From Mobula birostris (Eukaryota), in contig NC_092383.1 of NCBI RefSeq assembly GCF_030028105.1, forward strand, positions 86,261,921 through 86,325,920: a stretch of 64,000 nucleotides of DNA, written 5' to 3'. The position numbers and the translations under genes are program-made. Under the pieces are notes generated by a model. That model worked only from the letters and a program-made list of their open reading frames with translations, did no database searches and was not told the DNA's origin. Shown here in pieces: positions 13,281 to 61,151 of the stretch (positions are counted from its first letter, which is position 1; each line of letters begins with the position of its first letter).

Positions 13281-13325
13281 TCTTAAGTGATGGAACAATG
13301 AAGGCAGATGATGGAACAATTTGTT

Positions 13326-14478: not shown

Positions 14479-14939
14479 TACATGAGGCATCCATTGGTAC
14501 TTCCTTAAATTCTGTTTTGTAAGTCATGTAAAGAGCACAGAAGTTCTCAGCATATCCACTGAGAATTGCTTTGGGATGTCCTCAGAAAGGGAAAGGGCCC
14601 CTTTCAGAATCAGAATCAGGTTTGTTTTAACTGTCTTCTGATGTAAAATTCCCTGTTTTGCAGCAGAAAAAAAAACGAGCAAGTTCATTCCCTCAGACTA
14701 TTAATGAGTTTGGGTTTAACAGGTCCAGATTCACAAGTGGGACCACTGTAAATGGAATCATCTCGGGCTAATCAAATCCCATCAGATAACCCTGACTTGT
14801 AGAGGTCAAGAGCTCCTAACAGACTCTAGTGTTTTTGCTTCACATCCTCACACAGCAGGTGAAGACTATTGTGTCATATTCCTCCTTGTCAGTGAGGCAT
14901 TTCAAAGTTTAAAATTCAAATTAAATTTATTATCAGAGT

Positions 14940-25745: not shown

Positions 25746-26234
25746 ACAGCATTTAATAGAGTAAAATGTTCTTCAGCAGTTCACAGCCATGATAGGGTTA
25801 AAAATTGTTGCCTGTGCCACAAAAAGAAAACAATGTGAAAAGGTGCCATATAATTGAGATCTGCGGAGGTGGCATGTTGGAAATGGAATGCTCAAAAAAG
25901 TTAATGTCCTGAAGTATGGTAACATTATTTCTTCACCTTCATGAAGTTGATAATGAATGATGAGAGGTTAATTCTCCATAAATGTTAAATTTGCAGAAAT
26001 TCTGAAGAAGTATGAATACTTGATCCTGTTGCGAGATTTCAACACAATCTGTGTGATCCCAAAGCCTTCACTTTACCTTATAGACCACTCTGGGAGGATC
26101 TGATTCATCAGGTTTCTGTAAAAGGCAACGGTCAAATCATCAGACTCATTGACACTGGGAACTCTGCTTTAGAGTTGTATCTGGAGCTTGGACTCCAATA
26201 TATTCACATCAAACATTCTGCACACATACAGTTG

Positions 26235-26255
26235 TCAACATCTTGTCAATATCAT
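26235..26255 (-). CDS. Unit B candidate last coding exon (MILTRC*)
   Basis: CTATCTGCAG acceptor after a 114-nt intron from the TM exon, phase 0, with a stop after 6 codons. The polypyrimidine tract is weak. Confidence 0.45.
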   Translation of the reverse strand: MILTRC

Positions 26256-26369
26256 CTGCAGATAGCTTTGGATTGACCATTGGATAAGAAATAGTCAATG
26301 TGTTTAAATATCTTCCCTCAAATGATCAGTATATTTGAAAGCAAATTCCATTGATGTCCAGAAACCTAC

Positions 26370-26460
26370 CTTAGTTTCCCTTGTGAACCATGAGACTGAA
26401 ATAGTGCAGATCAGCAGCAGTGTGAAGAGCAGCCAACGACCAACCTTCCATATCATGAAA
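26370..26460 (-). CDS. Unit B transmembrane exon (FMIWKVGRWLLFTLLLICTISVSWFTRETK)
   Basis: Acceptor CTCTTCCCCTTTGCTCAG (phase 2, matching the stalk exon) and donor GTAGGT. A hydrophobic core is preceded by Lys and Arg. It is the only TM-like exon found in the window. Confidence 0.8.
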
Positions 26461-26874
26461 CTGAGCAAAGGGGAAGAGATACAGAACTGATGAGACAAAA
26501 CGAGATGGCTCTGTGTTTGAAACATTTACCTCCTGTTTCCTCTGTAACCTTAGTGGAGTGGAGCTCGGTAGATAAGCACAGGCAGACGAGTTTAATTAGA
26601 AGAGTAAACTAGTGTTGACAGAACGATGAGTAGGAGAAAGGAGAAAAACCTGATCATCATCTGGAACAAAACCACATTTTCTCGAGGCAGTGGCAACATC
26701 TTGGATTGCAGTCATTCATTGATACTATTATGATTGTTGGAATTCCTGAGTATGCCCGCTAGAAAATGAATCTCAGGGTTGTATAATAAATTTATTTTGA
26801 GCTTTGAAATCTTTTCTGCATTACATCTAGTTCAATAACATTTTTTTTTAGCAGAATACCAACTTCTCCTCTCA

Positions 26875-27071
26875 TGTGTCATCACTGATTATTATTCTTC
26901 CATATTGTTCACTTTGCCCATTTGTATTCACTAACAATGTGCTCTGGCAGTCCTACATGAGGCACAAATACTTTGTGTGTGAACGGTATATTGGTGCATA
27001 GTGACAATCGATTGTGACCACTCTTCCCCACAACTCCTCTTATTTATCTTCTGCCCATAAACCACACAAAA
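26875..27071 (-). pseudogene. Truncated pseudo-exon of the V' type inside a late intron of unit B
   Basis: Homologous to 40898-41218 (VTIDCHYAPIYRSHTKYLC...NTNGQSEQYGRIIISD). It has -1/+1 frameshifts, a TAA, an in-frame TAG at 26953-26955, and is truncated after the ISDDT segment. Confidence 0.9.
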
Positions 27072-28159
27072 CTGAGGGAGAAATTCTTCAGAAAATTTAC
27101 AGGTAAAATTAAATTTACACAAGTAGATTCAAGATTGTTTAATGTCATTTCTTGTATACAAATGTAAAGGAGAACAAAATCATTGTTCCTCTCGATCTGA
27201 AGCAGCACAAAAACAAAAAAAAAATAAAGAAAGCAATAATAATAATAAAAGATGTTTTACTTAAAGCCTCTTTTGCACATTGGACATTTGTCGGACTTTG
27301 TTGTGTGTGGTTTGTCATGGATTCTATTGTGTTTCTTTGATTTGTGCATGTGTGAAAGAAGATGAATCTCTAGGTCGTTTATGGTGTATATACTTTGATA
27401 ATAAGTTTACATTGAATTTTGAACTTGGAAAGTGGCTAATGGGATGACTGATGGAATTGAACTCAGGCAGTGTGAAATGATGAATTTTGGGAAATTGAAC
27501 AAGGGCAAACCTTACGCAGTAGAGAACTAGGTGTGCAACTACACAGATACCTGAAAATGGTAAGACAGATACCTGAAAGTGGCAACACAGGCAGACAAAG
27601 TGCTGAACAAGGAATATGACCAGCTTGCCTTCATATGATGGGGCATTAATACAGTTGCGATGGCATGTTAGAGCTATAAAGGACATTGTCACCATCTCAT
27701 CTTGAATACTCTGTGTAGTTCCATAGGAAGAGTGTGATTAAATTAGAGAAGGTACAGAAAGCATTCACAAAGATGCTGCTAGGACTGGAGGGTTTGGGTT
27801 ATGGACAGGCTCGGACAGTTTGAAACTTGGATGTGCAAGTTCAACTATGTTTGAAATGCTCCACATTTGAATGGAGTAAGTGACAGATTATAACATTGCA
27901 TTAAGGTAGTACAAGGGGAAACAGTAAGAGAATGCAGAATAAAGTGTTACAGTTACAGAGAAAGTGCCATGCAGTAGACAATAAGCTGCAAGCCCAGTTA
28001 GATTATAAGATCAAACACCCATTTTATCATACTACGAGAGCATCCAATAGTTTTGTAACAGTGAGAAAGAAACTGTCCTTGAAGCTTGTGGTACATGCTT
28101 TCAGACTCTTGTAATTTCTGCCCAATATCAGGGGAGAGGAAGAGAGTACGTCAGTGGCT

Positions 28160-30840
28160 AAAAGATGGCTGCTATTGAGAGCTGAATGTCCAAGGATCTA
28201 CTGTGTATTGGAAAGATAGGTTGATAGGCAGAAGGGGTGGTGTGGCCCTGTGTATAAGAAATAATATTAAATCATTAGAAAGGGATGACAGAGGATTGGA
28301 AGGTGTAGGGTCTCTATGAGTTGAGTTAAGAAATGTCAATGGTAAAAGGACCCTAATGGCAGTTGTGTACAGACCTTCAAACTGCAGCTGGGATGCGGAT
28401 TACAAACTTCAGCAGGAGATAAAAAAGGCATGTCATAAGGGCAATATCATGATAACCTTCAGGGATTTTTACATGAAAACGTCTGGGGAAAGCCAGGTCA
28501 GTACTTGACCTCAAGAGAGAGGATTTGTAGAATGTCTAAGGCATAGTTTTTTAAAACAGCTTGTTATTGAGCCCACTTGGGGATAGGTTGTGCTGGATTG
28601 GGTGTTGTGCAATGATCCGGAGGTGATAAAGAGAGCTAAAGGTTAAGGAACCCTTAGGGAACAGTGATCACAATATGATCATTCACTTTGAAATTTGAGA
28701 AGAAGAAACTAAATTCAAATGTGTTGGTATTTCAGTGGAATAAAGGAAATTACAATGGCATGAGAGGGGAACTGGCCAAAGTTGACTGGAAAGGGACACT
28801 AGCAGGAAGGACAGCAGAGCAGCAATGATTGGAGTTTCTGCGAAAAATGAGGGAAGTGCAAGGCAGATATATTCCAAATAAGAAGAAATTTTCAAATGGA
28901 AGGATGATACTACCATGGCTGACAAGTGAAGTCAGAGCCAAAGTAAAAGCAAAAGAGAGGGCATACAAGGAAGCCAGAGCTAGTGGGAAGATAGAGAATT
29001 GGGAAGATTTGAAAGACTTACAGAAGGAAACTAAGAAGGTCATTAGGAAGGAAAAGATGAATTATGAGAATAAGCTGGTAACTAATATCAAAAAAGATAC
29101 TAAAGGCTTTTTTAAGTATATAAAGGGTAAAAGGGAGTCGAGGGTAGATATAGGGCCAATAGAAAATGCCGTTGGAGATATTGTAATGATAGACACAGAG
29201 ATGGCATATTTTGCAACAGTTTTCACAGTGGAAGACCTCTGCAGTATACCTGATATTCAAGAGTGTCAGGGAAGTGAAGTATGTGCAGTGAAAATTATGA
29301 CTGAGAAGGTGCTCAAGAAGCTTAATGGTTTGAATGTGGATAAATCTCCTGGACCTAATGGAATGTACCCTTGGGTTCTGAAGGAAGTAGCTGGAGAGAT
29401 TGTGGAGGCATTAGCAGTAATCTTTCAAGAATAAATATTTCTGGCATTGTACCAGATGACTGGAAAATTGCAAATGTTATTCCGCTATTTAGGAAGGGTG
29501 GGAGGCAGCAGAAAGGAAACTGTAGGCCTGTTATCCTGACATCAGTGGTTGAGAAGTTTTTGGAATTGATTGTTAGGGATGAAATTACAGAGTACCTGGA
29601 GGCATATTGCAAGATAGGCCAAAGCTAGCAGAGTTTCCTGAAAGGAAAATCCTGCCTGACTAACCTACTGCAATTTTTTGAAGAAATTACTAGCAGGGTA
29701 GGCAAAAGAGATGCAGTGGATGTGGTGCACTTGGATCTTCCGAAGGCCTTTGACAAGGTTCCACACATGTGGCTATTTAGCAAGTTAAGAGCCCAAGGAA
29801 TTACAGGGAAGTTACTAGCATGGGTGGAGTATTGGCTGATCGGTAGAAACAGAGAGTGGTAATAAAGGGATCCTATTCTGGCTGGCTGCCAGTTACCAGT
29901 GGAGTTGCACAGGGTTTGGTGTTGGGACTGCTGCTTTTTACAATGTACAACAATGATTTGGTCTATGGGATTAATGGATTTGTAGCTAAATTTGCTGATG
30001 ATACAAAAATAGGTGGAGGAGCGGGTAGTGTTGAGGAAACAGAGAGCCTGCAAAGAGCCTTAGATAGTTTAGGGGAATGGGCAAAGAAGTGGCAAATGAA
30101 ATACAATGTTGGAAAGTGTATGGTCATGCACTTTTGTGGAAGAAATAAATGGGCAGACTATTATTTAGATGGGGAGATAATTCAAATTGCAGAGATGCAA
30201 AGGGACTTGGGAGTCCTTCTGCAGGATACTCTAAAGGTTAACCTCCAGGTTGAGTCAGTGGTGATAAAGGCGAATGCAATATTGGCATTCATTTCTAGAG
30301 GTATAGAATACAAGAGCAGGGATGTGATGTTGAGGGATTATAAGAGAATGATTCCAGGAATGAAAAAGTTACTATATGGGAAACGTTTGGCAGCTCTTGG
30401 GCTGAATTCCCTGGAGTTCAGGAAAATAAGGGGGGATCTCATAGAAACATTCTGTATGTTAAAAGGCCTGAATGGATTCGAAATGGCAAAGTTATTTCCC
30501 ATGGGAGGGGAGTCTAGGACAAGAGGGCATGACTTCAGGATTGAAGGATGTCCATTTAGAACAGAAATGCAGAGAAGTTACTTTAGTCAGAGAGTCGTAA
30601 ATCTGTGGAATTTTTTGCCATGAGCAGCTGTGGAGACCAAGTCATTTTGTGTATTTAAGGCAGAGATAGATAGGTTCTTGTTTAGCTAGGGTAATCAAGA
30701 GCTATGGGTAATGAAGGGTATGGGGAGAAGGCAGGCGAGCGGGGATGACTGGACGAATTGGATCAGCCCATGATTGAATGGCGGAGCAGACTCGGTGGGC
30801 CAAATGGCCTACTTGTGCTCCTTTATCCTATGGTCTTATC
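28160..30840 (+). mobile_element. Degenerate CR1 LINE ORF2 (EN-RT) with 3' end
   Basis: ORFs 28829, 29371 and 29856 carry DKSPGP, NCRPVILTS, GVAQG and FADDTK. The tail CCTATGGTCTTAT lies at ~30830. Confidence 0.92.
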
Positions 30841-31133
30841 GGTAATTGGGTCTTCAATTAGATTGGCTGCTTTACCATGTCAGTGAAGTGTATTAAAATC
30901 AATTAAAAATATAAATTATTACAAATATCCATAAAGTATAATTATGTATGTATGAATGTGTATAACAATCAGGATGTGGGGAGAAGCTGAGGTAATATCT
31001 ACAGATCCCTCTGCACTCACAATTGAAGGATCTAATAAAGGAAACACTGCCTCTGCTTAAAACCAGCTCTCCTACAAAAGTCAACTCCCTCCTAATTCCA
31101 TACTGGTTTGGACATTGATTGTTGAGTTCTCAC

Positions 31134-31199
31134 TGGTGTCACGTCAAAATCTTTTCCCCTCTGGACTGTGGAACATCTTCAACAGACCCAGTAGAAAGC
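31134..31199 (-). CDS. Unit B candidate second stalk exon (66 nt, phase 2-2) containing an in-frame TGA
   Basis: Acceptor ATACATTCACTGCAG and donor GTGAGA. It reads (R)LSTGSVEDVPQSRGEKILT*H with TGA at 31139-31141. Confidence 0.5.
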
Positions 31200-31539
31200 C
31201 TGCAGTGAATGTATCAGGGCAAACAGTTTGACATCACATGAGCTCCTCCAAGCACACATTGTAGATGGAGATGTCTCCTGCTGTTACATAACCAGCACAT
31301 AGAGAAATAACTTGAAATGTGATGTCCTCAGCCAGTAATTGAGCAGGAACTTTGCCTTGCTGTGACTTTCGCTGCTGTGGAACCAGTGGTAAAGAAGCTT
31401 TGCAAGTTCTTGGCCAGTACAGCTCAACTTATGTCATGGGATAGAGTTAGCCGTGGAACTGTCAGAGTAAATGCTACAGGGAGCACCCTCTGAGTCATGA
31501 CAAATGGAGGAACATGTTCTAATTTCCTCATCACAGACA

Positions 31540-32410
31540 TAGCACAGCAGTGTGATGTAAACATGACGCTATTTCCATTCTGATGAGCTGCAGATCAGGA
31601 AGGTTCAGGGATGCCACTTTCCTGTAAGAATGAAGTGCAAGTCTGGCAGGATTAGGAAATCCTGGCTGACAAGGGATATTGAGATTCTGGTCAGGAAAAA
31701 CAAGGCATCGGCAGTGAATCCCTTGAGGAATGTAAGAGATATAGGTATACAATTAAAAGAGATCAGGAAAGCAAATAGAGTATGTGAGATAACATAAGCA
31801 GATAAGGTAAAAGAATTCTGAGAGTCTTACACGTCTATTAAAAGGAGAAGAGCAACAAGGAAGAGATTAAGTTCCCATAACGATTAATGTGATCATCCAT
31901 ATGTGGAGCTACAGGAGACTGGTGAGGTCTTAAATTAATATTTCTTGTCTGTATTTACTGTGGAGCAGGTCATGGAAGATAGGAATTAAGGGAAATGAAT
32001 AGTGTTCTATTGGAACATATCATTACAAAAGAAGAGTTGCTGGCAGTCTTGAAGAATATAATTTTCAGATAATCTCATAGGGCCTGAGCAAGTGTAGCCC
32101 AGGATATTATGAGGAGCTAGGGAGAAATTACTAAGGCCTTGGCAGAGATATCTGCATCACCCAGCCATAAGTGAGGGAACAGAAGTGTGGAGGATTAATG
32201 GCAAATATTGTGGCTTTATGTAAAGAAGGGGTACAAAGGCACGCCAGGAAGCTGCATGTCAGTGAGACCAACATCACTGGTCGGAACCTTACAAGAGAGG
32301 ATTCTGAGAAATAGAGTCGACTAGCAATTGGATAAGCAAGGACTGATGAGGAATAGTCTGCATGGGAAATCAGATCTCACCAATATGAATGAGCATTTGA
32401 AGAGGTGACA
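31540..32410 (+). mobile_element. Highly degenerate CR1 ORF2 fragment
   Basis: Recognisable CR1 segments include GAGGTCTTAAATTAATATTTCTTGTCTGTATTTACT and CCAACATCACTGGTCGG. Confidence 0.65.
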
Positions 32411-32689
32411 GTGTCACGATGTACGCTGGCAATGTTGGAACCCAATTGCACAGGAAATCCAGACTCCAATGTGGAGACGGAGACCAAAGTTTATTCATAG
32501 GAATTCCAACAGAATGTCAATGGCTGAGCGGCAACTGCAAGACTGAACGCTCTCAAATTGGACCCCGCGATTAGCGCTAATCAGGCATCCGCTTAAGTAA
32601 TACAAGTAATATGGAATTCCTGAGCCTATCAAAATGATGGAACGCACACCATGATGGACTGTTTATTGTCACCAGATATTTTAACCACG

Positions 32690-34700
32690 TGAACCTTAAG
32701 TCAGTGCTCCCCAGATTCCATCAGAACATGGACTTTGCAACGAGAGGGGAGAATGTGTTGGACCTTGTTTACACAAACATTCCCGACCCCACCTCAGCTA
32801 CTCAGACCACGTCTCTGTTATGCTAATCCCAGCGTACAGACAGCACATCAGGCGCGCCAGACCTGTTCAGAAGCAGGTGAAAACCTGGCCAGCAGGAGCC
32901 ATCTCTGCTCTTCAAGAATGCTTTGAGCACACTGACTGGCACATGTTCAGGGAGGCTGCAACTGACGGCGACTCTACCAGCTTAGAGGAGTACACGGCAT
33001 CAGTGACTCAGCAAGTGCGTCAATGACGTCACTGTGGCCAAGACCATCACTACACGCGCTAACCAGAAGCCATGGATGACCACAGAGGTGCGTGCGCTGC
33101 TGAGGACCCGTGACTCCACCTTCAGAGCAGGCGACAGGGCAGCCCTAACAACAGCAAGGGCCAAACTGTCCCGGGCCATCAAAAAGGCAAAGCGTGCACA
33201 CGCCCAGCGAATCCACAGCCACTTCCAGGATAGGGGCGGCACATGGCACCTGTGGAAAGGCATTCAGAACATCACCAACTACAAGACAACACCACCTGCC
33301 TGTGCTGGTGATGCCTCCCTCCCAGATGCGTTGAATAACTTCTATGCTCGTTTTGAGGTGAAAAATGACATGGCAGTGAGGAAGACCACTCCTCCTCCGA
33401 ACAACCAGGTGCTGTGTCTTACCTTGGCTGATGTGAGGAGAACCCTGTGCAGGGTCAACCCATGGAAGGCTGCTGGACCAGACAATATTCCTGGCAAAGT
33501 GCTTAGAGTATGTGAAGACCAGCTAGCTGAGATTCTCACTGACATCTTCAACATCTCCGAGCAGCACCGTCGTTCCTACGTGCTTCAAGGCCGCCACCAT
33601 CGTCCCCGTGCCGAAGAAGTCTTCAGTGTCCTGCCTCAACAACTACCATCCCGTCACACTCACAACCATCATCATGAAGTGTTTCGAGAGGCTCGTCATG
33701 GAGCACATCAAGACCCTGCTGCCCCCCTCACTGGACCCCCTGCAGTTCACGTACCGTCCCAACCGTTCAACAGACGATCCCATTGCCATCACCCTCCACC
33801 TGGACAAAAAAGACACTTACGTTCGAATGCTGTTCATAGACTTCAGTTCAGCATTCAACACAATCATTCCTCAGAAACTGATTGGAAAGCTGAGCCTACT
33901 GGGCCTGAACACCTCCCTCTGCAACTGGATCCTAGACTTCCTGACTGGGAGATCTCAGTCCGGATTGGAAGCAGCACCTCCAACACCATCACACTGAGCA
34001 CGGGGGCCCCCCAGGGCTGTGTGCTCAGTCCACTGCTGTTCACTCTGCTGACCCACAACTGTGCTGCAACACACAACTCGAACCAAATCACCAAATTTGC
34101 CAATGACACGGCCGTGGTGGGTCTCATCAGCGAGAATTATGAGTCAGCTTACAGAGAGGAGGTGCAGCGGCTAACAGACTGGTGCAGAGCCAACAACCTG
34201 TCCCTGAATGTGAACGAAACAAAAGAGTTGTTGTTGACTTCAGGCTTCAGGAGGACACGGAGCGACCACTCTCTGCTGAACATGAATGACTCCTCCGTAG
34301 AGATCGGTAACAGCACCAAATTTCTTAGTGTTCACATGGCGGTGAATCTCACCTGGTCCCTCAACACCAGCTCCAGAGCAAAGAAAGCCCAGCAGCGTCT
34401 CTACTTTCTGCGAAGGATGAGAAAAGTCCATCTCTCACCTCCCGTCCTCACCACAGTCTACAGAGGTTGTATTGAGAACATCCTGAACAGCTGCATCACT
34501 GCCTGGTTCGGAAATTGCACCATCTTGGATCGCAAGACCCTTCAGCGGATAGTGAGGTCAGCTGGGTAGATCATCGGGATCTCTCTTCCCACCATTACCG
34601 ACATTTACACCTCACGCTGCATCCGTAAAGCAAACAGCATTATGAAGGACTCCATGCACCCTTCATACAAACTCTTCTCCCTCCTGCCATCGAGCTGCCA
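32690..34700 (+). mobile_element. Rex1/Babar-type LINE ORF2 fragment with frameshifts
   Basis: ORFs 33034 and 33608 carry [41 protein letters not shown] and QRLYFLRR. Confidence 0.9.
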
Positions 34701-35420
34701 TAGCAATCCATAGAAATGGATACATTAACAAAGGTTAAGAGACATTTTGACAGATGTGTGGATAGGAAAGGCTTAGAACAGGGCTTCACAAACTTTTTTA
34801 TGCCATGGACCTTAATTCATCAACTTCAGTTTGTTTATTTATGTGTAATTAATCTGTAGATTTCATTCTCACTTTCATAAACTATTATGCATTATGTATA
34901 CTGCAGTGCTTTGTATCTTGGTTTGGAGAAACATTGCCTCACTGGACGGTATACATGTATATAGTTAAATGACAATAAACTTGACTGGACTGGACTGGAC
35001 TTGATCCCAGGTTGGGAGCCCCTGGCAGAGAAGGATATGGAATAAATAAAATTAAATGTGCTGAACTTAGATGAACATCCTGGTTGGCTTGGACGAGTCA
35101 GGCTGAAGGGCCTGTTGTTCTAATATATATCAAAGACATTATGATTCTATACATGAGCTTCAACTGCTATGCTTAAATTTTTAAATAATTGGGGAAGAGA
35201 AATTTTTCTTTGATCTCAGGCTTGACGCATGTTCAAGAAAATCAGGAATGCTCAGTTTCCAAGATATGAGTTTGTTGAAGTTAATCATGTCAAATATGAT
35301 AAACACTAGTTGAAGAGAAACAGATTTCTCTCCCAACTGGCTCTACTTGGAAGCAGTAGCAGTGAAACCACCCGCAGCGAAAACCTTATACTTTACATCT
35401 GGGCTGGAGTAGTTTCTTAC

Positions 35421-35475
35421 CTTTGTGCGGTTGTCATCAATTCTGTCACAGTATTTTCACAGAAATCAATTCTCC
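35421..35475 (-). CDS. Unit B stalk exon 1 (GRIDFCENTVTELMTTAQ; 55 nt, phase 1-2)
   Basis: Strong acceptor TTTTATTTTATTTTCTTTTAACAG and donor AG|GTAAGA. The only stop-free frame is the one that matches the C2' phase. It is Thr-rich and has one Cys. Confidence 0.75.
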
Positions 35476-36159
35476 CTGTTAAAAGAAAATAAAATAAAAT
35501 TTCAGCTGCTTTGTACTTGCAAGAACAAGAGAGCACAGTTATTAGACCAATAGGTACTTGAACATGGTGGACCAAAGGTGATCTATTACCTGATGCACAT
35601 TTAAAGATTAAAGATGAGCTTTATTTGTCGCATGTACATCTGATCATACAGTGAAATGTATCGTTTACAACAGTTACCAACAGAGTTTGTGCTGGGGGCA
35701 GCCTGCAAGGGTTCCATGCTTCTCGCACCAAAATGGCTTCCATAGGACTTACTCATCCTAACCTGTGCATTTCTGGAACGTGGGAGGAAACTGCGGCCCC
35801 AGAGGAAACCCTCGCAGTCACTGGGAGAACATACAAACAACTTGCAAACAGTGGTGGCAATTGGACCCTGATCGCCGATCGCTGGTGCTGTAATAGTGTT
35901 ACAGTTAATTGCTGTGCTCCTGTGCAGCCAATTACATTTACTGGCAGTTTGGATACAGGGAGATAATCCAACAGGATAATGCAGGAGGTTTTCTCAATGA
36001 AAAAGCAAGGTCTTTTGTTTCTCACATCTCTTGATGTCTCTACCTCTGAGAAAAATAACTCAATCTTTCTTGAATACTGGTTCACCACATTCTGGGAGAA
36101 GAAATCTTTCCTAATCCCAGTCTTAAATGTCTCACCCTTCAGATAATTTCTAAGATTCC

Positions 36160-36590
36160 AAGCTTACTTACTTACTGTCCGTTACACCACTGGTGTTTAG
36201 GGCAGCAATGAAGGTGTCCTATCTCTGGCAGTGTTCGGGGCTTCCTTCATTGTGTCAGTAGGTCCCTCTCGGTTTTCACTGCTGTCAGTCATGCAAGTCC
36301 CAGGTAGAGACTGAGCAATACCGTCAAACTCTGATGGAGAGGAATTTTTCATTTCTGTTTCCATGACAATTTTGTTGAACCAATCAGGCTTGTCAGTCCT
36401 GAGTGAACCCCCCGAACCTGGAGGATTGGGGGACCACTCTAAGTCTGGCCCCTACCCTCTGACCTGTTCGGCATGGGTGACCCGATGAACTGCCAAAGCA
36501 TAAAGCCCTCACTCCAGCCAACGTAGCTCTCTGCGTCATTGAGGCATGCAAACCTCCAAATCTAACGACAAATTTGTGGTTCTCTTGGAG
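36160..36590 (-). mobile_element. Short retroposed element with (TAAG)n-type tail
   Basis: TTACTTACTTAC tail at ~36165 and a body unrelated to the gene units. Family not identified. Confidence 0.5.
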
Positions 36591-38076
36591 GTAAGTCTCA
36601 TTAGACTATCCTGTATTCCCTGGCATTTGAAGCATCCTACCTGCATCTGTATCACCCTGCTAAAATATTGCTCATTTCTATGTGATCACCTCTCAGCCTA
36701 CTGAACTCCATCAAATAAAAACCAATTACATTTGCTCTCTGATCTTGTGTCACTTGTGGCATTCCAGAAATCAGTCTGCTGATCCTTTGCTTGCCTTCTT
36801 CCTTAACAAGAACATCTTTCATTGAACCAAATCTGCTGACAATGCTGGTGGCCCAAGACTGAGGCTCGAGTCAATGTCTGATCGATTTAAGCTTCAGGCC
36901 AGAAAGGAAAGATCGGGTATGGGCCAAATCGAGGCGGTGAGTCCTGCGTACAAGAGCGTGTCAAAGCAGCAAGAACCCCTACCATCCAAGCTATGCTGTC
37001 TTCTTGCTGCTGTCAGTACGAAGGAGTTGCAGGGGGCTTAGATCCCATATTACCAGGTTCAGGACCAATTATTATCTGCAACCTGTAGGCTCCTGAAACA
37101 TCATGGATAAATTCACTCACCAACACTGAACTGATTCTGCAACCGATGGACTCACTTTCAAGGATTCTACAGTTCATCTTCTCAGTATTTATTTGTTTAT
37201 CTCCTTCACCTTTCCCCTTTCCCTCTCTCACCATTCTCCTAACCTGCCCATGACCTCCCCCTGGCGAGCCTCCACTTTCCCTGCTTTCCATGGCCTTCTG
37301 TCCCCTATCAGATTTCCCCTCCTCCAGCCCTTTATCGCTTTCACCAATTGACTTTCCAGCTCTTTACTTCAACCCTCCCACTCTCTCAATTTCACCTTGT
37401 ACTTCTCCATCTCCTCCCACCGACTTTCTTACGTTGACTTCTAATCTCCTTTCCTTTCCAGTCCTGATGAAGGGTCTCAGCCCGAAACGATGACTGATGA
37501 CTCTTTTCAATAGGTGTTCCCTGGCCTTCTGAGTACCTCCAGCAATTTGTGTGTAGTGCTTTGCTTTCCAGCATCTGCAGGTATTCTCTTGTTAATTATT
37601 TATCTATTATTTGTTACTTTTGTATTTGCACAATTTGTCTTATTTTGCACATTGATTGTTTGACATTTTTGATTGTGTGTAGTTTTACATTGAGTCTGTT
37701 GTATTCATTTGTATCTACTGTGAATGCCTGCAAGAAAATGGATCTCGGGGTAGTATATGGTGACAAAAACTTAATTTTCTTTCAACTTTGAAGTGATTTA
37801 TCTTGGAAGGACTATCTTAATGAATGGCCAGAAATATTACCAGATGAGATACATTCACACCCAGCCAGCGAGAGTCAGATCAGAGACAGGAGACCCTGTG
37901 CTGAGAGACTCACATTTAAACGGCTGTGCCGAAAAGCTTCTCATTCTCTGAAACGTGGTGACAACATACACTTCATGCTCCTGTGTGAAGTTCCAACAAC
38001 ACAATATCCAGCACACATCAGTCATTCAGTTGTACTCCATTGACCATCATAAAGAATCAAACCCTCCAGCACTTAC

Positions 38077-38397
38077 CCATGCTGTTGACTTCAATCACAT
38101 TTCTGCAGCTGCTGACACTGTTGGACATGGACACACTGACCACTTCACTGGACTTCTCTCCATTAATATTTGAGGCTTTGCAATAATACAGATAATTTTT
38201 GTATTTTATGGATTGGCAATGTAGATCAAGTTTATTTGTGTCAGAGATCTTTGAATCCTCAGATGGCGTCTTTTCATACCATGAGTACTGAATGGGAAGG
38301 GATCCATGGACAGACTCACAGGACACTGACACGGAGTCCCCACAATTTGAGCCATTTGTTTGTGGTGAAAATCGAAGCAAAGGAAGAGACACAGGTT
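38077..38397 (-). CDS. Unit B second C2-type Ig exon (C2', 321 nt, phase 1-1)
   Basis: Acceptor TTCTGTTCCACAG, donor GTAAGT, open frame: EPVSLPLL..NCGDSVSVSCES..YSWY..LHCQ..YYCKAS..SSCRNVIEVNSM. Confidence 0.92.
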
Positions 38398-38889
38398 CTG
38401 TGGAACAGAATTAGTGAACATCTGAAAATCAAACACAAAGATTTCAGCAGTTCTGTATCTCAACCAGGAGCCACCAGTTTGGAATCTCAGCAGCTCATCT
38501 ACTCCACTGTGTCTCGTCATCCTCACAGCTGCCAGAACGTACATGTCTGTCAGTACCTCCAAAAACAGCAGGACTCCTGATCAGATCAACAGTGGTGACA
38601 CAGAGTATGTGTCAGTATGAAATTCAGGGCTTCAGTCTCTCTCAGCAGTGGGGAAACAGTCTAAAGTGAGACCAAACAGTTTGACTCTGGAATAGCAGCA
38701 TTTGTGGATGTTCTGGAAAACTCTCCATAGGTTGAAAGCAGGAAATTGTCAGATACATACAAAATGAATGGTGACTTCATTTTGTGAAGTCAGAAAGAGA
38801 TGAGTTATACAGCTCTCGTTACATGCACGTGCAGTTCAACTCTTTGAGTGATAATGCATTATGCAGAAAGTTTAAAGTTAATAACTCAT

Positions 38890-40030
38890 CTCCTTCTACT
38901 TTAGGCCACGAACGTATCAATCACCTCTGATGTGGACCACTTTCTGGAAGTCCAAAATGCCGGCTTCTACAAAGAATGGATCTGTATGCTCCATGACTCT
39001 TTAGATGCTGGATTAGTTCCTGAGGATTGGAGGGTGGCATGTAACCCCACTTTTTAAGAAAGGAGTGAGAGAGAAATTGGGGAATTATAGAATGGTAAGC
39101 CTGACATCGGTGGTGGGGAAAATGCTAGAGTCAGTTATCAAAGGTGTGATAACAGCACTCTTGGAAAGCGGTGAAATCATCGGACAGAGTCAGCATGGAT
39201 TTGTGAAAGGAAAATCATGTCTGACGAATCTCAGAATTTTTTGAGGATGTAACTAGTAGAGTGGGTAGAGGATAACCAGTGGATGTGGTATATTTGGATT
39301 TTCAAAAGGCTTTTGACAAGGTCCCTCACAGGAGATTAGTGTGCAAACTTAAAGCATACGGTATTGGTGGTATGCTATTGATGTGGATAGAAAATTGGTT
39401 GGCAGACAGGAAGCAAAGAGTGGGAATAAATGGGACCTTTTCAGAATGGCAAGCAGTGACTAGTGGGGTACCGCAAGACTCAGTGCTGGGACCCCAGTTG
39501 TTTACAATATATATAAATGACTTAGACAAGGGAATTAAATGCAGCATCTCCAAGTTTGCGGATGACACGAGGCTGGGCGGCAGTGTTAGCTGTGAGGAGC
39601 ATGCTAAGAGGATGCAGGGTGACTTGGATAGGTTAGAAGCGGGCAATTCAGAAGTTTTCCAGATGTTCCTCTGTACTCTCATGTCCGTCTCAATCAAATC
39701 AGAATTGTGCATGGTCCCCTACTTAACAGATAACAGACATCACCATCGAAGTGGTTGTGCGTGCTGCTGTCGCGCCGCCATCTTATCCTTCTCATTAGTA
39801 AAGGCTTCATCTCCCTCTGGCTGAAGAAGTTCCTCCTCATGTCTCTTTTAAAGGGACATCTTTCCATTCTGAGTCTGTGCTTTCTGGTCCTAGATGCCCA
39901 CACTGTAGGGAACCTCTCTTCACATCCACTGGGGTTTGCAATGCTCGATAGCTTTCAATAAAATCCACCCTCATTCTTCTAAACTCCAGCACGCACAGGC
40001 CCAGAGCCTTCAAATGATGTTCATACATTC
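38890..40030. mobile_element. Rearranged CR1 fragments (RT on + to ~39630, 3' part on - to ~40030)
   Basis: ORF 39279 carries YLDFQKAFDKVPH, GVPQ and FADD. The minus-strand ORFs 39694 and 39837 match the CR1 C-terminus. Confidence 0.8.
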
Positions 40031-40897
40031 AGGGAGTTTAACATCACCTGGAATTTAACAGATGGATCCCTTTAGAATTGATATACCGAGAGTTCTTGGG
40101 AAACAAGTCCATTGCTCCCTGAAAGTGGCAACACAAGTGGACATAATGGTAATGAAAGCATTCAGCACCTTTGCCTTCTTCACTCTACATGTTGGAGGCT
40201 GAAGCTGACTGGGCATCTTGTAGCTTCATAAAACACTGATTAGGTCACATTAGGAACATAATATGTATTTCTGGTTGCAACACTATAGGAAGGATGTTGT
40301 CATTTATCAGCCTATTTTTCAATCTATTGTAGATCTCTCTGCAAGCCATGATTGCCCCCCTGACTGTGCAATACACACACAATCTTGGTGTCATCTGCAA
40401 ATTTGCTGATTCATTTTACCATATTATCATCCGGATCACTGATACAGATGCAAACAACAACAGACCCAGCACCAATCCCTGCGCTAAGCATCATTGTTGC
40501 TAACTATATTTTAATTATGTTTGCCAGCGCCCCAGTAATTTCTGTACTTGCCTCCCGTGAGGTCCAAGATAACACGTTAGCAGGCCTTGGGGATATATTC
40601 ACACTGATTTGCCTCAGGAAAGCAAACACCTCCTCCTTTAACAGGGTGACGTCTCATAGAGTTCAGAAGCAGGAAAATATACTGAGCCTTCCACTGGAAA
40701 CCAGTATCCCAACAGTGGATCAGAACTCACAGTGGATGAGAGTATTATGAGCGAGGTCTCCCCATCTTTGCACACTCGCCACAGGGTTCTGCACTGCTGT
40801 GGAGCCTCCGGATATTCCTGCTGCCCTGACTCTTCCCAGAGAAAAACTGAATCAGACATTTCGGTGGAGACAACAAATCAATCAATGAGAAACCTAC

Positions 40898-41218
40898 CAT
40901 CAGATACTTGGAGATGCACATCAAACACTGGATCATTGCCAAAGGTTGTAATTCCACATCTGTAAGGTCCTGTATCATTAGAGACAAGATTCTCCATAGT
41001 AACAGTAAATATTCCTAGGGATGTGTTATCTCTGATTGTCATTCTTCCATACTGCTCATTTGTCCCATTTGTATTCACTAACGATGTGCATTGGCGACCC
41101 CACAGGCGGCACAAATACTTTGTGTGTGAACGGTACATTGGTGCATAGTGACAATCGATTGTGACCGCTCTTCCCACAACTCCTCTTCCTTCATCTTCTG
41201 TCCATAAAGCACCTGAAA
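40898..41218 (-). CDS. Unit B second V-type Ig exon (V', 321 nt, phase 1-1)
   Basis: Acceptor TTTTCTCCCTCAG, donor GTAGGT, open frame: VSGALWTEDEG..VTIDCHY..KYLCRLWGRQC..DTGPYRCG..VHLQVSD. Confidence 0.93.
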
Positions 41219-43484
41219 CTGAGGGAGAAAATCTTCAGAAAATGGACAGGTAAAATCAAATTTACACAAGCAGGCTCAAGTTTCAAGATTATTTAATGTC
41301 ATTTCCTGTACAAACGTGTAAACTGGAATTAAATCGTTGTTATGCTGGATCTAAATGCAGCAGAAAAAAACACAAAAGATAATGAATACAATTAAAATAG
41401 CTAAAGATGTTTTATTTACAACTGACACTGTGTTACAAGGAATCTGCCACAGTGTCAATTGATATAAATAAATTCCTCACAGACAGAGAAGACAATAACA
41501 TCGTCCCTCCTCACGTGCTCCCAGCTCTTCACAAGTAGCAATTTTTATTTGATTGGAGTCATCATTGTCACTGCCCACTAATGTCTCAGTGTGTTTCCAT
41601 ATTTCTGAGTCAATAGATTACTGATCCAGTCCCACTCCTGGCAGGTGAGCCCAAGATCAGTGGGGGGTAACTTACTGGAGGCAGGATCGACCTGAATTTG
41701 CAAAGGCAAGATCTGATTTGGGATAGTCAACATGATCTTGTGCATTGGAAATCCTCCCCCAAAACTATTTGACTGAGTTTTTTTTGAGAGACGATGAAAG
41801 GACAGGACCTTAGAGATTAGCAATTTTTGTTTAGCAAGGTTTATGACCATACCTTGCATAGCAGACTGATCTGTAATGTGAGATCACATGGTAAGCTACC
41901 TGGATGGATATTGAATAGGCTTGGTGGAAGGATACAGACTGTGGTAGTGGAGTGTTGGTTTTCTGACAACATCAGACTTTATCACCAGCAATGTGCCATC
42001 AGGATCGTTGCTGTTATTTGTTAACCACTCTTATTGTCATCAATATTAATAATCTGGAATGAAACTGTAGGTGGCATGATTAATAAGTTATGGGTGAGAC
42101 AGCAGTGTGGTGGACAGTGGCAAGAGTTGTGTAAGTTTACACGAGGATCTTGAAAATGAGCCGGTGTTCAGCCCCATTATTCTGTGCCAGCAAGCTGCCC
42201 CCTCCCCACCTGAGCCTGTATTGTCTGTTTGCATTTGACCTGTCTCCCTCTCTTCTTGGTCCTACTATCAGGTGGAAGGTGCAGGAGCCTTGGGGCCCAC
42301 ACCGCAGGGTTCGTCAACAGTTGTTGTCCTGCAGCTATCAGGCTCCTGGATTGGTTTCACTCGCCTCAGCACTGAACTGACTCTGCAGCTGTGGACTCAC
42401 TTTCAGAGACTCTGCCTCTCATGTTCTATGTATTATTTGTTTACATAGTTTTATTATTTGCACGATTCATCATCGCTTGCACATTGGTTTTTTGTCAGTC
42501 TTTGTTGTGTGTGGTTTTACATGGATTCTATTGTGTTACTTTGTTTTGTGGGCAAAGGTATGGTGGATAATCACAGTCTTTATCCCAGGGTGGGGGAGTT
42601 GAAAACTAGAGACCCTCGGCTTAAGGAGTGAGGGAAAATTCTTAGAGATCCCGGAGCAGCCGTGTTTTACACACACAGCCGTGTGTGCATGGAAAAGGCT
42701 GTCAGAGGAAGTACTAGAGATGGTTACAAATACACTATTTAAAATACATTTGGACAAGTTCATATATAGGCAAGTTTTAGAAGGATACGAGACAAATGCA
42801 GTGAAATGGGAGAAGCTCAGGAAGACACTGTGGTCAGCACGGATGATTTGGGGTGAAACTCCTGCGTCCATAACCTATAACTCCCTGACTCTGCAGCATC
42901 CTCTCTAAACTGGAACATGCTTTTAAAAGGATAAATTCAGAATTCTATTTCATTGCATAGATGTGACAGCTCATGGGATCACAGCCTATCAGATTGCACT
43001 TCAATCTCAACAATCAAAGTTCAAAGTATACTTATTATCAAAGAATCTATACTATATACAACCTTGAGATTCACCTCCTTCCAGGCAATCACAAAAAAAT
43101 AGAACATCCCAATATACAGAAAAAAGAGCAAATCAAAGTAAGCAAATAACATTTGGAACTGAAATTCACAAAACTGAGGCCACAGCCAAGAAGCCAGTCA
43201 TCACTGTAGTCAATTCATGAGGCCATTAATTGCCAACCACAGCCTCAGTTCAGCGTAAAGACACGTAAACCTTCTGTGCAGCAAGCTGAACACCAGCCAT
43301 CCCTCACCTTGGACTGACATTCCTTTAGTGATTAAAAGGGAATTGAAGGTTTATTATCCTTGTTGTAATCATGAAATGCAGCAGCCTTGTTCATAGAAGG
43401 AATGGATTTCCTTCTCATGTCTCAAAGCGAGTGAGGTTTTTTATTTAACAAACAAAAACCCAATTTCAGCGGTTAGTAATTTAC

Positions 43485-43508
43485 CTGGGCTGCTCAGATA
43501 TTCAAAAG
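43485..43508 (-). CDS. Candidate 24-nt linker microexon (AFEYLSSP, phase 1-1) between C2 and V'
   Basis: TTGTCTTTGGTCGTCTCTAG acceptor, CAG|GTAAAT donor, frame-preserving. Supported by sequence only. Confidence 0.4.
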
Positions 43509-43511
43509 CTA

Positions 43512-44420
43512 GAGACGACCAAAGACAATGAGACCATTAGACATAGGAGGAGAATTAGGCCATTTGGCCTATACAGTCTGCTCCACTATTCCATCAAGGC
43601 TGACTTATTATCCCACTCAATTCCATCCTTGGCATTTCTCCCCATAATCTTTTGATGCCTTTCCTAAACAAGAAACTATTAAGTACGCTTTAAATATACT
43701 CAAATGTCTTGGCCTCAAAAGCCATGTATGGTATTGAATTCCACAGATTCAACACCCTCTGGCTACAGAAATTCCTCCTCATCTCTGTTCTAATGTACGG
43801 AGTCTGCACATCCTCCATGTGGAATGTATGGGGTCTCCCCGAGTGGTCCTGTTTCCTCCCACAGTCCAAAGACATACTCATTAGGATAACTGCTCTTTGC
43901 AGATTGCCCTGTGATTATGTTACAGTTAATTGGGTTTGTCGAGAGTTCGATCGGTGTTGTGACCCAAAGGGCTGGAAGGGCCTATTCTGTACTCTATCGG
44001 TAAATAAATAAAATAAAGGGATGCCCTTGCATTCTGAGGCTGATTTTTCAGGATGATTTCCCCATAAGGAAACCACTTTTGATCATATACCTCCAAATAC
44101 CCCAAAATCCTGTTCTTAATAATAGACTCCCACATCTTCACAACCACTAAAGTCAGGCTAACTGGTTGACAATTTCCTTCCTTTCGCCTCCCTCCTTTCT
44201 TAAAGAGTGTGGTGATACTTCCAATTTTCCAATCCTTTGAACATTCCAGTCTAATTATTCTTGAAAGATCACCACTAATGCCTTCATGATTTCTTTAAAT
44301 AACTCTTTCAGAAACTTGGGATGTAGTACATCTGGTCCAAATGACTCATCTACTTTCAGATCCCTCAGCTTCTCAAGCACGTTTTGCTTAGTAATAGCAA
44401 CAACACTCATCTCTGCCCCT
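43512..44420 (-). mobile_element. Degenerate CR1 fragments (3' end and RT) with a nested short repeat at ~43800-44010
   Basis: Antisense CR1 3' end (CCATTAGACATAGGAGGAGAATTAGGCCATT). ORF 44255-44524 contains VDESFGPDVLHPKFLKE. Confidence 0.75.
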
Positions 44421-44787
44421 GCCATTGCCAAATTTCTGTCATTCCCACTAATATTTGCAATATTATAAGTCCTTCCTTTTGCTTTTATGAGAATCAGAAG
44501 TCGATACCAGTCTGGACTTTTCAATGTGAAGCCAGAAGTATTAATGGAATGCTCTCAATTTGTCGAGATGCGCAAGTCCAACTATGTTTGAGATGCTCCA
44601 TATCTTCCAGGAGCAAGTGACAGACTTAACTGTTCACTGCACTTTAGTTCTACCCCATGGATGCTGCAATGTGCAGCTTCTACAAATGCAAACAAATTCC
44701 TTACCCTCACTAGAGGTATAAGAGCAGCAGTAACAGAGTAATAAAAAGAAATATTTAAATGTATCCTCCCTTGAAATTAGAACTTAC

Positions 44788-45108
44788 CGCTGCCATTGAT
44801 TTCTGTCACGTAACTGCAGATATCTCTGTTGTTGAAGACTGTCGCAGTAACCATTGCACTGGATCTTGCTCCAAGCCGATTTGAGGCACTGCAGTAATAT
44901 TGCTGGTGTGTGTGCTTGAAGGATTGACAATGCAGAGTCAGTTCATGGGTATCTGAGATCTTCGGATACCCAGATGAGGTTTGTTCATACCATCTGTATT
45001 GAATGGGAAGGGATCCCTGGAAGGACTCACAGGAAAGTGACACTGAGCCCCCGAGACGTGAGACATTTGCTGGTGACAGATATCGAATCACAGGAACAGA
45101 CACGAGTT
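44788..45108 (-). CDS. Unit B first C2-type Ig exon (321 nt, phase 1-1)
   Basis: Acceptor TTTCCCACAG, donor GTAAGT, open frame, paralog of 4069-4389. Confidence 0.92.
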
Positions 45109-45160
45109 CTGTGGGAAAGAATTAAACATTCAGACACTGAATGAACATCTGAAAATCAGA

Positions 45161-45700
45161 CACTCTTCTGTCACTTTATTACGTACAAATATTAACCTGA
45201 TCATTAATACAAATATCTAATCAGTCAATCAGACGATCAGCAACTCAACTCATCAAAGCATGCAGAAATATTCAAGAGTTTCAGTCAATGTTAGGCCAAA
45301 GTCAGAATGCGGAAGTATTGTGATCTAAGTACCTTTGAGCATGCAATTATTGCTGGTGCCAGACGGGGTAGTAAATATCTAAGGCACTACTATCCTCCTG
45401 GGATTTTCACACACAACTGTCTCTAGAGTTTAGTGAGAATGGTACGAACAACATGATAAAACATCCAGAGAGCAGCAATTCTGTGAACAAAAGTGCTTTA
45501 TTAATGAAAGAGGTCAGAGGAGAATGGCCAGACATGTTCATGCTGACAGAAAGGTGACGGGAATTCAAATAACCGTGGGTTATGACAGCGGTGTGCTGAA
45601 GAGCATCTGAAGGTACAACACGTCAAAGCTCGAAGTGGATGAGCCACAGAAGCAAGAGACCATGAACATCCACTCAGTGGCCACTCTGTTATGTTCAGGA
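45161..45700 (+). mobile_element. Tc1-type derivative in the V-C2 intron of unit B, at the same position as 4441-4993
   Basis: Same left end ACACTCTTCTGTCACTTTATT and same internal structure as the unit A copy. Confidence 0.8.
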
Positions 45701-45912
45701 GGTTTAAAGGCAGCAACTTGTGAGATATCTGTCACATGTTTGGAGGCTTTCAGGAGAGAATGAAATTGTAACTGGGTTCAGTGACCTGCCGTATAGAGGG
45801 AGACATTTGGTACTGATATTAATGCAGAGATAGTGAGGGATGGACAGTGTCTGGCAAAGATCATGAGACTTTTATTTTATGGAATGCACAAATCAATCAC
45901 TGAGAAACCTAC

Positions 45913-46233
45913 CATCATTTACTGTTAGTTCTAAATTAAATCTTGTATCGAGACCTGGTGTTGTAATTCCACAGCTGTACCATCCTGAATCTCCAGAGTG
46001 AAGATCTTCCATAGTAACAGTAAATATTCTCCGTTCCGGGTTATCTGTGATTGACACTCGTCCACTCCGTCTGTGCTGCTCATTTGTTTCCACTAAAACT
46101 GAACAATGGAGATTCCATCCATGGCACCAATACTTTGTGTGTGAGCGGTACTTTTCTTCATAGTGACAATCGATTGTGATCGCTCTTCCCACAACTCCTC
46201 TTACAGATTTCTCTGCCCACAATGCACCTGAAA
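45913..46233 (-). CDS. Unit B first V-type Ig exon, CD300/pIgR-like (321 nt, phase 1-1)
   Basis: Open frame with the same splice sites as the unit A V exon: KYWCHGWNLHC and DSGWYSCG. Confidence 0.95.
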
Positions 46234-46659
46234 CTGAGGGAGGCATTGTCAGATGTGAGGGAAAGGAACAATTTAATACAACAATTATTTTTCAACATGA
46301 CGGTAAAAGCAGGTGCAGGTCATGTACAGCATGTGTTCCATGACAACACAGCCAATGATTTTTGTGTGAAGTGCAGTCAGTGCTGTTACTGTGTCAGCCG
46401 TGTCAGTGATCTCTCTTCCCTGTGTCGGTACATTGTGGGTTCACTTCCCACTCCAGAATCCTGAGCAGAAACCCAGGGCTGATCTTCCAGTGCACTGCTG
46501 GGGGAGAGCCGTAGTGTAGCTAGAGGGTGTTGACTCTATGGAATTCAATACCATACACAGCTTTTGAGGCCATGAAAGTGTTCAACTTTCAGTTGCTTCA
46601 GAATATGTCAGCCTTTGAAATGTCCACAGAGCTTCCAGCTATTTCATAAGATGCTCCCA

Positions 46660-46663
<4 letters not shown>

Positions 46664-46693
<30 letters not shown>
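46664..46693. repeat. (TG)15 microsatellite
   Basis: Perfect dinucleotide run. The paralogous position in unit A (6034-6046) has only about (TG)6. Confidence 0.95.
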
Positions 46694-46696
<3 letters not shown>

Positions 46697-47589
46697 CTGT
46701 GTGTGTTCAGACAAGGTTCTGAAGCAATTTGTAAATATTGTACCTATCAAGTATTTCTATGTGTAGTTAGAAGGTGGCGCAACAGTGGTCATTAGTGCTT
46801 CTGTGTCTAGAAACTCAGGTGAGATTTCAATAACTGTTGAGATACTTTGAGTATGAAAATCCAATTTATTATTTCTGGTATTTAAAAAACAAGTATCAAT
46901 AATAATAATGATGAACTGTCAGATTGTAAAGATCCCATCTAGATTGGAAAGACTTTTAGGGAGAGAAATTTCTTATCCCTACCGCCCTGGTTTACCTTTG
47001 ACTCCAGATCTAGTAACGTTCTATGCTAACTGCACCACTGAAGTGGCCCAGGAAGGACTCTGATTTCAAGACAATAACGTCAAATGTCGCAGTGATCCCT
47101 GCAGAGAGAGAACAGATCCCAGCAATGGTAGATCTGATGTTCTCGCTTAACAGGTTGCAGTAGATTTCTCCAGCTGGACATATTCTCCCCAAACCTGGCT
47201 CTACACAATTCTTCTTTTCTCCTTATCTGCTTCCACCTCTCACCCACCTCCAAACACCATCCCTTTTCCACCCCATTCCATTTGCCTGTTGTGCTTCACT
47301 ATTCCTCAGCCCCGACTAACTTGAGGACCCAGTTTCACACTTCCCCCTCTCCTATTTAACCCTCTCCCGCTCTACTCACACATGAGGCAGGGTCTCGACC
47401 CGAACCATTGACATTTCCTCTGCCCCTGACAGAAGCTGCTTGACCCATTGAGTTTCTCCATGAGTGAACTCTGAGCTCCAGTTTCCGACAGCTTTAGTGT
47501 CTACGGGTATCAAGCATTCTTGTGAAAACGTTGTACGACCCCCAATCCAACACTGATTATGCAGTTGTCCAGTGCTGTCTGTAACTCAC

Positions 47590-47629
47590 CAGGTAGGAAA
47601 CCAGTCAGAAGGATCAACGTCCACAGCAT
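47590..47629 (-). CDS. Unit B signal-peptide exon (MLWTLILLTGFLP)
   Basis: ATG, 13 codons plus 1 nt, donor GTGAGT, in phase with the V exon. Confidence 0.9.
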
Positions 47630-58231: not shown

Positions 58232-58364
58232 CTGTGGAAAGGAATTCAACAATCAGACACTAAATGAACATATGAAATCAAAAACTCCTCTACCACTTTA
58301 TTAGGTACACCTGTTCACCTGTTTGTAAATGCAAATATCTAATTAGCCAATCATGTGGCAGCGT

Positions 58365-61083: not shown

Positions 61084-61151
61084 TGCTTTATTCACAGAGA
61101 CCCAGCCAGGACCTGTCTGTCCTCAGCAAGAAGTAACAGTGAAATAAAAAT

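Follow-up and report, generated by a model that had tools for sequence, protein, structure and literature searches.

The window analysed here, a 64,000-nucleotide (nt) stretch of contig NC_092383.1, very probably carries an intact eight-exon gene for a 505-residue type I membrane glycoprotein, an activating-type paired receptor of the modular domain immune-type receptor (MDIR) family of cartilaginous fish. A sequence-only reading of the same DNA had proposed a complete gene with four immunoglobulin (Ig) domains (V-C2-V'-C2') and an activating-type transmembrane (TM) segment. The gene lies on the minus strand and runs from an ATG at 47629 to 26068 (Table 1); read exon by exon in the DNA, its eight exons join into a 1518-nt open reading frame of 505 codons with phases 1,1,1,1,1,2,0. 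The Ig exons were mapped by stop-to-stop frames and self-BLAST of the window, and the stalk and tail exons were found by tblastn of homologous proteins onto it; the TM peptide quoted in the sequence-only reading maps to the minus strand at 26459. Every splice site is canonical, with GT donors and acceptors that have good pyrimidine tracts. Each of the four Ig exons (V, C2, V' and C2') is 321 nt long, runs from phase 1 to phase 1 and has AG/GT sites, and a tandem acceptor for exon 2 lies 6 nt downstream, at 46227. At the 3' end, C2' is joined to the exon of the short, Cys-bearing stalk (phase 1 to 2), and the next exon in the chain is the TM exon (phase 2 to 0).

The translated model aligns end to end and without gaps with an independently predicted protein, P0175, with 495/505 residues identical. 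P0175 is XP_072134926.1/927.1, a 505-residue Mobula birostris record named 'polymeric immunoglobulin receptor-like isoform X1'. The open 505-codon frame and this match bear out the proposal that V, C2, V', C2' and TM form one complete chain in a single frame. All ten substitutions fall in the Ig domains (the V' exon is 98% identical to P0175 residues 229–334 and the C2' exon 99% identical to residues 336–441), while the stalk, TM segment and tail are 100% identical. The gene for XP_072134926 has the same eight-exon junctions and, like the window gene, spans 21.6 kb. Because of the ten amino-acid substitutions, the two are not the same sequence, and the window gene would come from another haplotype or a sister species, or be a very recent paralogue. 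Isoform X2 (XP_072134928.1, 503 residues) differs from X1 only by two residues ('SV') at the C2-to-V' junction, which is the exact product expected from the tandem acceptor cag/tttcag/ at 41218/41212. The NCBI pipeline calls alternative isoforms from transcript evidence; if these two isoforms are transcript-based, the C2-to-V' junction has probably been seen in RNA. RefSeq models of several rays join C2 to V' at these same sites. V' lacks a leader of its own upstream, and C2 is not followed by a stalk or TM exon, so V'-C2' cannot be a separate gene, and the placing of all four domains in one gene holds.

Beyond mantas, the order V', C2', stalk, TM and tail recurs at a sawfish locus (L001), with which four regions of the window (C2', stalk, TM and tail) align as collinear conserved blocks (C2' block, L001 55845–56428; tail block, L001 62359–62567). 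A profile-free HMMER search with the C2 exon returned about 950 relatives, the closest of them from rays, and searches seeded with two of these reached more than 100 named RefSeq models. The sawfish locus holds two tandem modules of stalk, Arg-TM and tail (12187–14668 and 59685–62459) with identical stalk exons, and RefSeq places overlapping models of 744 and 678 residues on opposite strands there, over 60 kb. Among the other family models, P0026 (Pristis) translates the Arg-TM exon in an incorrect frame (…LHDMECAALGAL…), P0012 (M. birostris) runs into a coiled coil like that of ORF1 of long interspersed nuclear elements (LINEs), and the gene of P0198 (Hemitrygon) spans 146 kb, across three other models.

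The ectodomain combines two kinds of Ig domain. Both V exons match Pfam V-set, and the four Cys of the V domains are arranged as in CD300/pIgR; their PDB matches are pIgR (3.7e-51 as a sum over its domains) and CLM-1/CD300f (2e-20). Both C2 exons match Pfam Ig_3/Ig_2, with FcRL5 (5.3e-35, summed over 6 stretches) and CD22 d6–d7 (1.3e-6) as PDB matches. An AlphaFold2 (AF2) model built with 26 relatives shows four beta-sandwich domains and one helix at residues 460–489, which includes Lys465 and Arg468, and the top Foldseek matches of this model are pIgR ectodomains.

MDIRs have been described as multigene activating and inhibitory receptors that resemble CD300, TREM, FCAR and pIgR (PMC3031540, which cites Cannon et al, 2006, Immunogenetics 58:362, for MDIR). 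By its sequence, the window gene is a member of this known family. With P0175 as the query, clearnose skate MDIRs were matched with E values of 1.4e-207 (MDIR3), 1.2e-185 (MDIR5) and 2.9e-82 (MDIR2). MDIR5 (ABC86800.1, 501 residues), a GenBank protein entry under the name of the 2006 authors, is 59% identical to P0175 end to end in BLASTP (504 columns, 3 gaps). Although it comes from a different order of rays, MDIR5 shares with the window gene the V-C2-V-C2 order, a C-x14-C spacing across the junction of the last C2 domain and the stalk, the WKVGRW...F TM module (its TM segment reads ISWKVGRWLLF...) and a short (K/R)(R/P)DES(E/D)P... tail. The two differ in the stalk (RIDFCEN... against HEYSCEN...) and at the end of the tail (VVYKVK in the window gene, SAHELQ in MDIR5). 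As in the MDIR description, CD300/pIgR-like and FcR-like domains are combined in one ectodomain, here as alternating V-set and Ig_3 domains, and the relatives show the architectures VC, VCC, VCV, VCVC, VCVCVC and others. The family is also multigene with both kinds of membrane part: among 124 models, 33 have an Arg TM segment and 51 a neutral one, with or without motifs like the immunoreceptor tyrosine-based inhibitory motif (ITIM).

Better-known families, among them the two whose names RefSeq has lent to these genes, fit less well. Mammalian CD300 and pIgR have V domains of the same subtype as the window gene, including the second disulfide. However, pIgR has V-type domains only (five in mammals, two in teleosts), a neutral TM segment and a long sorting and transcytosis tail, whereas domains 2 and 4 of the window protein are of C2/FcRL type, its TM segment contains Lys and Arg, and its tail has about 20 residues. 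CD300/CMRF35 proteins have a single two-disulfide V domain on a mucin-like stalk; the window protein shares the V subtype and its four Cys but has four Ig domains, with V alternating with FcRL-type C2. CD300 likewise includes activating members (charged TM segment, short tail) and inhibitory members (ITIM). FcRL proteins have an ectodomain of C2/FcR domains only and an ITIM- or ITAM-like tail of their own (ITAM, immunoreceptor tyrosine-based activation motif), whereas two of the four domains here are V domains of pIgR type and neither Yxx[LI] nor an ITIM is present. Since the defining features of both families are lacking, the RefSeq names 'pIgR-like' and 'FcRL5' are misleading. A 2014 survey found neither pIgR nor FcRL in cartilaginous fish (PMC4016189).

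The membrane part is of the activating type, as the sequence-only reading had said. The TM exon (26460–26370) reads FMIWKVGRWLLFTLLLICTISVSWF, then TRETK; the hydropathy peak of the protein lies at residues 462–485, and both this peak and the AF2 helix include Arg468. An ungapped BLAST search with the TM exon matched 58 of the 266 collected proteins, which gave 41 distinct segments from mantas, stingrays, sawfish, skates and carpet sharks. The TM Arg and the Trp that follows it are invariant in all 41, and the position three residues before the Arg, Lys in the window gene, varies (K, D, S, N, T). After the Arg come 17 hydrophobic residues and TRETKK, a geometry shared with FcalphaRI, GPVI and NKp46. 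In having an Arg, about 17 hydrophobic residues after it and a short, motif-free tail, the window protein resembles FcalphaRI, GPVI, OSCAR, LILRA, NKp46 and macaque KIR3DS. After the hydrophobic core, the tail consists of TRETK and KPDESDPPRVVYKVK, about 20 residues, and contains one Tyr (Y502), in place of the 12 residues and absence of Tyr given by the sequence-only reading. Its statement that the tail lacks a signalling motif stands, as the tail contains neither an ITIM nor an ITAM, and Y502 fits neither [SIVL]xYxx[IVL] nor Yxx[LI]. A subgroup of ray paralogues keeps this Tyr, as LVYKVK-COOH. The window gene thus combines what characterizes adaptor-coupled receptors, namely a conserved basic TM residue (Arg in 41/41 segments, within the helix at 460–489) and a short tail without motifs.

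An inhibitory counterpart is found among the M. birostris models. XP_072134916/917 (P0257/P0165) has four domains, a neutral TM segment and an ITIM tail (…NIVYADL…). Its identity to P0175 falls from 106/107 in V and 104/107 in C2 to 98/107 in V' and 85/107 in C2', and its TM segment and tail are unrelated to those of P0175. Such a gradient from the outer domains to the membrane is the usual signature of an activating/inhibitory pair, so the expectation that ITIM partners exist is borne out in the family and, at the level of these predicted proteins, the paired-receptor reading is supported. The expectation that they lie close by fares less well: inhibitory-type TM or ITIM exons, searched for in the window with nine tails, gave chance-level matches only (one of them inside a LINE), and the nearness of the partner comes only from a shared 99.8-Mb record and close accession numbers.

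Table 1 Exons of the receptor gene and other features of the window (positions in the window; splice boundaries are marked by a slash).
Feature	Position	Strand	Details
Exon 1, start codon and signal peptide MLWTLILLTGFLP	47590..47629	-	40 nt; donor CTG/gtgagt; phase out 1; P0175 residues 1-13
Exon 2, V domain of pIgR/CD300 type	45913..46233	-	321 nt; phase 1 to 1; Pfam V-set E 1.4e-13
Exon 3, C2-type Ig domain of FcRL5/CD22 type	44788..45108	-	321 nt; phase 1 to 1; Pfam Ig_3 2.4e-8
Exon 4, second V domain (V')	40898..41218	-	321 nt; phase 1 to 1; Pfam V-set 2.7e-9
Exon 5, second C2-type domain (C2')	38077..38397	-	321 nt; phase 1 to 1
Exon 6, stalk RIDFCENTVTELMTTAQ	35421..35475	-	55 nt; phase 1 to 2; donor AAG/gtaaga
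Decayed relic of first half of neutral, inhibitory-type TM (…SIRFSLRVVSLLLL)	35345..35420	-	Non-coding intron; found by tblastn
Exon 7, TM exon FMIWKVGRWLLFTLLLICTISVSWFTRETK	26370..26460	-	91 nt; phase 2 to 0; Lys465 and Arg468
Exon 8, cytoplasmic tail KPDESDPPRVVYKVK and stop	26068..26115	-	48 nt; acceptor ttgccttttacag/AAA; 100% identical to P0175 C-terminus
Unit A, dead leader-V-C2 copy	61083-57997	-	V: 2-bp deletion, 3' end and donor lost; C2: 1-bp deletion, shortened
Leader-like piece MWILILLISFLP and badly decayed V-like fragment	56631-56596, 55138-54924	-	Probably a fourth, dead unit
V'', partial V' duplicate (82%) with 200 bp of upstream intron	27263-26874	-	Inside stalk-to-TM intron
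Unit C, open leader MWTSVLLIGFLP, V (5669-5349) and C2 (4390-4070)	7900-4070	-	80-88% DNA identity to unit B
LINE fragment	3-1562	+	
LINE fragment	13462-14523	-	
LINE fragment	29364-30708		
LINE fragment	39017-39821	+	
LINE fragment	58276-59293	+	

The stalk exon bears both on the origin of the membrane part and on the possibility that the locus mainly makes a soluble product. In inhibitory members, the stalk and the neutral TM segment form one continuous coding stretch. When the window was searched by tblastn with such a protein (Hypanus P0069), the match continued in frame into the intron after the stalk donor (58% identity over 43 residues, E 1.7e-8); the 17-residue part beyond the stalk scores 20 by itself, which only 23 of about 128,000 window positions reach (top 0.02%). 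The stalk exon therefore looks as if it originated in an inhibitory stalk-plus-TM exon. It would have been derived from such an exon by an old truncation, with a donor inside the former stalk-TM exon diverting splicing to the distal Arg-TM exon. This donor, AAG/GTAAGA, overlaps an in-frame TAA in the first bases of the intron. Hemitrygon P0198 and Hypanus P0069 read RKETTSPQ after the stalk, which suggested that a nonsense mutation specific to Mobula had produced a rescuing donor; this was ruled out, as the sawfish has GG/GTAA at the same position, with an intron that can be aligned over more than 120 nt, so the donor is an old, regular one. A capture of the Arg-TM and tail exons from a downstream gene, of which the dead V'' at 27.0 kb would be a remnant, was also considered and is unneeded, since C2', stalk, TM and tail are collinear in the sawfish without V''.

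With a stop built in directly after the stalk, intron retention would give a secreted form, and in one alternative the main product of the locus is a soluble or decoy four-Ig protein (ending TTAQR and then TAA where the donor is unused), with the Arg-TM form minor or retained in the endoplasmic reticulum. The intron opens with the in-frame TAA in manta and sawfish alike, it is unusually alignable between the two, and a Hypanus RefSeq model (P0177) stops nine residues past the same stalk motif. Skate MDIR4 and MDIR5 reportedly lacked signalling motifs in the 2006 abstract. We nevertheless consider this alternative unlikely, because the donor AAG/gtaaga is near consensus, the TM and tail exons further downstream are undamaged, match P0175 at 100% identity and are conserved with the sawfish, and the invariant Arg-Trp argues for selection on the TM segment. 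The conserved intron may serve an intron-retaining secreted isoform or splicing control. The alignment of 35420–35216 (minus strand) with L001 59742–59940 is unusually well kept, at about 72% identity over more than 300 bp including the exon. A second conserved block, at 73% identity and without a coding match, lies deep in the stalk-to-TM intron (31592–31410, minus strand; L001 60009–60191).

The gene lies in a minus-strand cluster of Ig exons, in which every V exon is followed by a C2-type exon. Three duplicated leader-V-C2 units lie at 61.4–58.0 kb (A), 47.9–44.0 kb (B, the studied gene) and 8.1–3.3 kb (C), and one V'-C2' pair without its own leader lies at 41.4–38.1 kb; beside the studied gene, three further units or relics of the family are present. 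Unit C is collinear with unit B down to 1656 and leaves the window at its start, which places its 3' end, whether activating or inhibitory, beyond the window; among the collected proteins, none was more than 87% identical to it. The LINE piece at 44554–44258 is common to units B and C and so predates their duplication. The pieces at 56631–56596 and 55138–54924 are probably a fourth, dead unit. In V'', the acceptor is destroyed (tttcag to ttttgt), stops and a frameshift break the frame, and the copy breaks off some 200 bp into the exon; the stalk-to-TM intron of the sawfish lacks it. V'' is a partial duplicate of V' and the intron upstream of it, and is specific to this lineage. Introns and spacers are full of LINE reverse-transcriptase fragments, the longest of which has an open frame of 354 residues.

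Such surroundings raise the question of whether the window copy is itself a silent or decaying paralogue in a cluster of fast turnover. Pseudogenes of the same family lie in the window (the frameshifted unit A, V'' at 27090–26875 and the fragments at 56.6–54.9 kb), the introns of the gene are swollen by LINE fragments, and no transcript evidence comes from the window genome. All eight exons, however, are open with intact splice sites, and only 10 substitutions, with neither a stop nor a frameshift, separate the protein from P0175, so we regard decay as quite improbable.

The exact model of the sequence-only reading, with nine exons (phases 1,1,1,1,1,1,2,0), an end at MILTRC* (26255–26235) and a 12-residue tail without Tyr, is very improbable: although the acceptor ctatctgcag/A at 26256 is usable, in phase 0 and nearer the TM donor, its polypyrimidine tract is weaker than that of the acceptor at 26116, no homologue carries the MILTRC* peptide, and 26255–26235 falls in the gap between the TM and tail blocks that is not conserved with the sawfish, while the exon at 26115 is conserved. 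The supported tail exon (26115–26068) lies 120 nt beyond the lower end that had been proposed. Eight exons are supported, and the RefSeq model has no extra phase-1 exon; tblastn gave no homology-supported candidate for one, and no block between C2' and the stalk is conserved with the sawfish. A candidate at 31199–31134 was rejected because it has stops in the usable frames, is absent from the RefSeq isoforms and lies outside the conserved block at 31592–31410, and a possible mini stalk exon at about 26560–26525, close to the acceptor side of the TM exon, has no phase-compatible frame.

By analogy with known receptors, the product of the eight-exon gene would couple to an ITAM adaptor. Its four-domain ectodomain would bind a putative ligand, the TM Arg would pair with an acidic TM residue of a dimeric ITAM adaptor of the FcR-gamma/CD3-zeta or DAP12 kind, and the adaptor would recruit a Syk-family kinase, so that the window protein would be the activating side of a receptor pair. 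Coupling of this kind through a basic TM residue is established knowledge. FcalphaRI and CHIR-AB1 associate with FcR-gamma or DAP12 through a positively charged TM residue (PMC4016189). In macaque activating KIR, the TM Arg couples to FCER1G, and the receptors arose by recombination of a TM/tail module (PMC8102735); in the window gene, too, the TM and tail look like a separate module on an ectodomain of inhibitory type. FcR-gamma-coupled receptors differ from the window gene in having unrelated Ig domains, and the 2014 survey detected no FcR-gamma in cartilaginous fish (PMC4016189). Two ideas are put forward jointly and tentatively: that the Arg-Trp TM segment of MDIRs uses an ITAM adaptor in animals where FcR-gamma has been reported missing, and that the TAA at the stalk donor acts as a switch between membrane and secreted forms. 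Candidates for the adaptor are a CD3-zeta-like chain, a DAP12-like chain or one not yet described.

Several points weigh against reading the locus as a working activating receptor. Expression is taken from RefSeq isoforms of a near-identical species or haplotype, whose RNA support is itself presumed. Many RefSeq models of the family are chimeric or mis-framed (P0012, P0026 and the P0198 gene), so that model support alone is weaker than cDNA. The AF2 model is mediocre, with a mean pLDDT (predicted local distance difference test) of 64 and values below 50 in C2' and the stalk. The Arg lies at the outer edge of the hydrophobic core, with 17 hydrophobic residues before the inner boundary, and how deeply it is buried is uncertain. 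Finally, both the adaptor partner and the ligand are entities that we infer, and the absence of FcR-gamma from the 2014 survey of cartilaginous fish (PMC4016189) counts here too.

The MDIR family, the V-C2-V-C2 plus Arg-TM architecture and a near-identical RefSeq model are already public, and apart from the adaptor question the finding is ordinary for an immune gene cluster. It provides a corrected gene model for an activating MDIR of a manta-type ray, an MDIR identity that the RefSeq names "polymeric immunoglobulin receptor-like" and "Fc receptor-like 5" obscure, and a V-C2-V-C2 plus Arg-TM design that is conserved from skates to mantas and sawfish. M. birostris shows the textbook pattern of paired receptors, with near-identical outer domains and diverged membrane-proximal parts. 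The window gene also sharpens the question of which adaptor an Arg-TM receptor of cartilaginous fish uses; if the proposed coupling is true, identifying the MDIR adaptor would establish which adaptor system was ancestral for the paired Ig receptors of jawed vertebrates.

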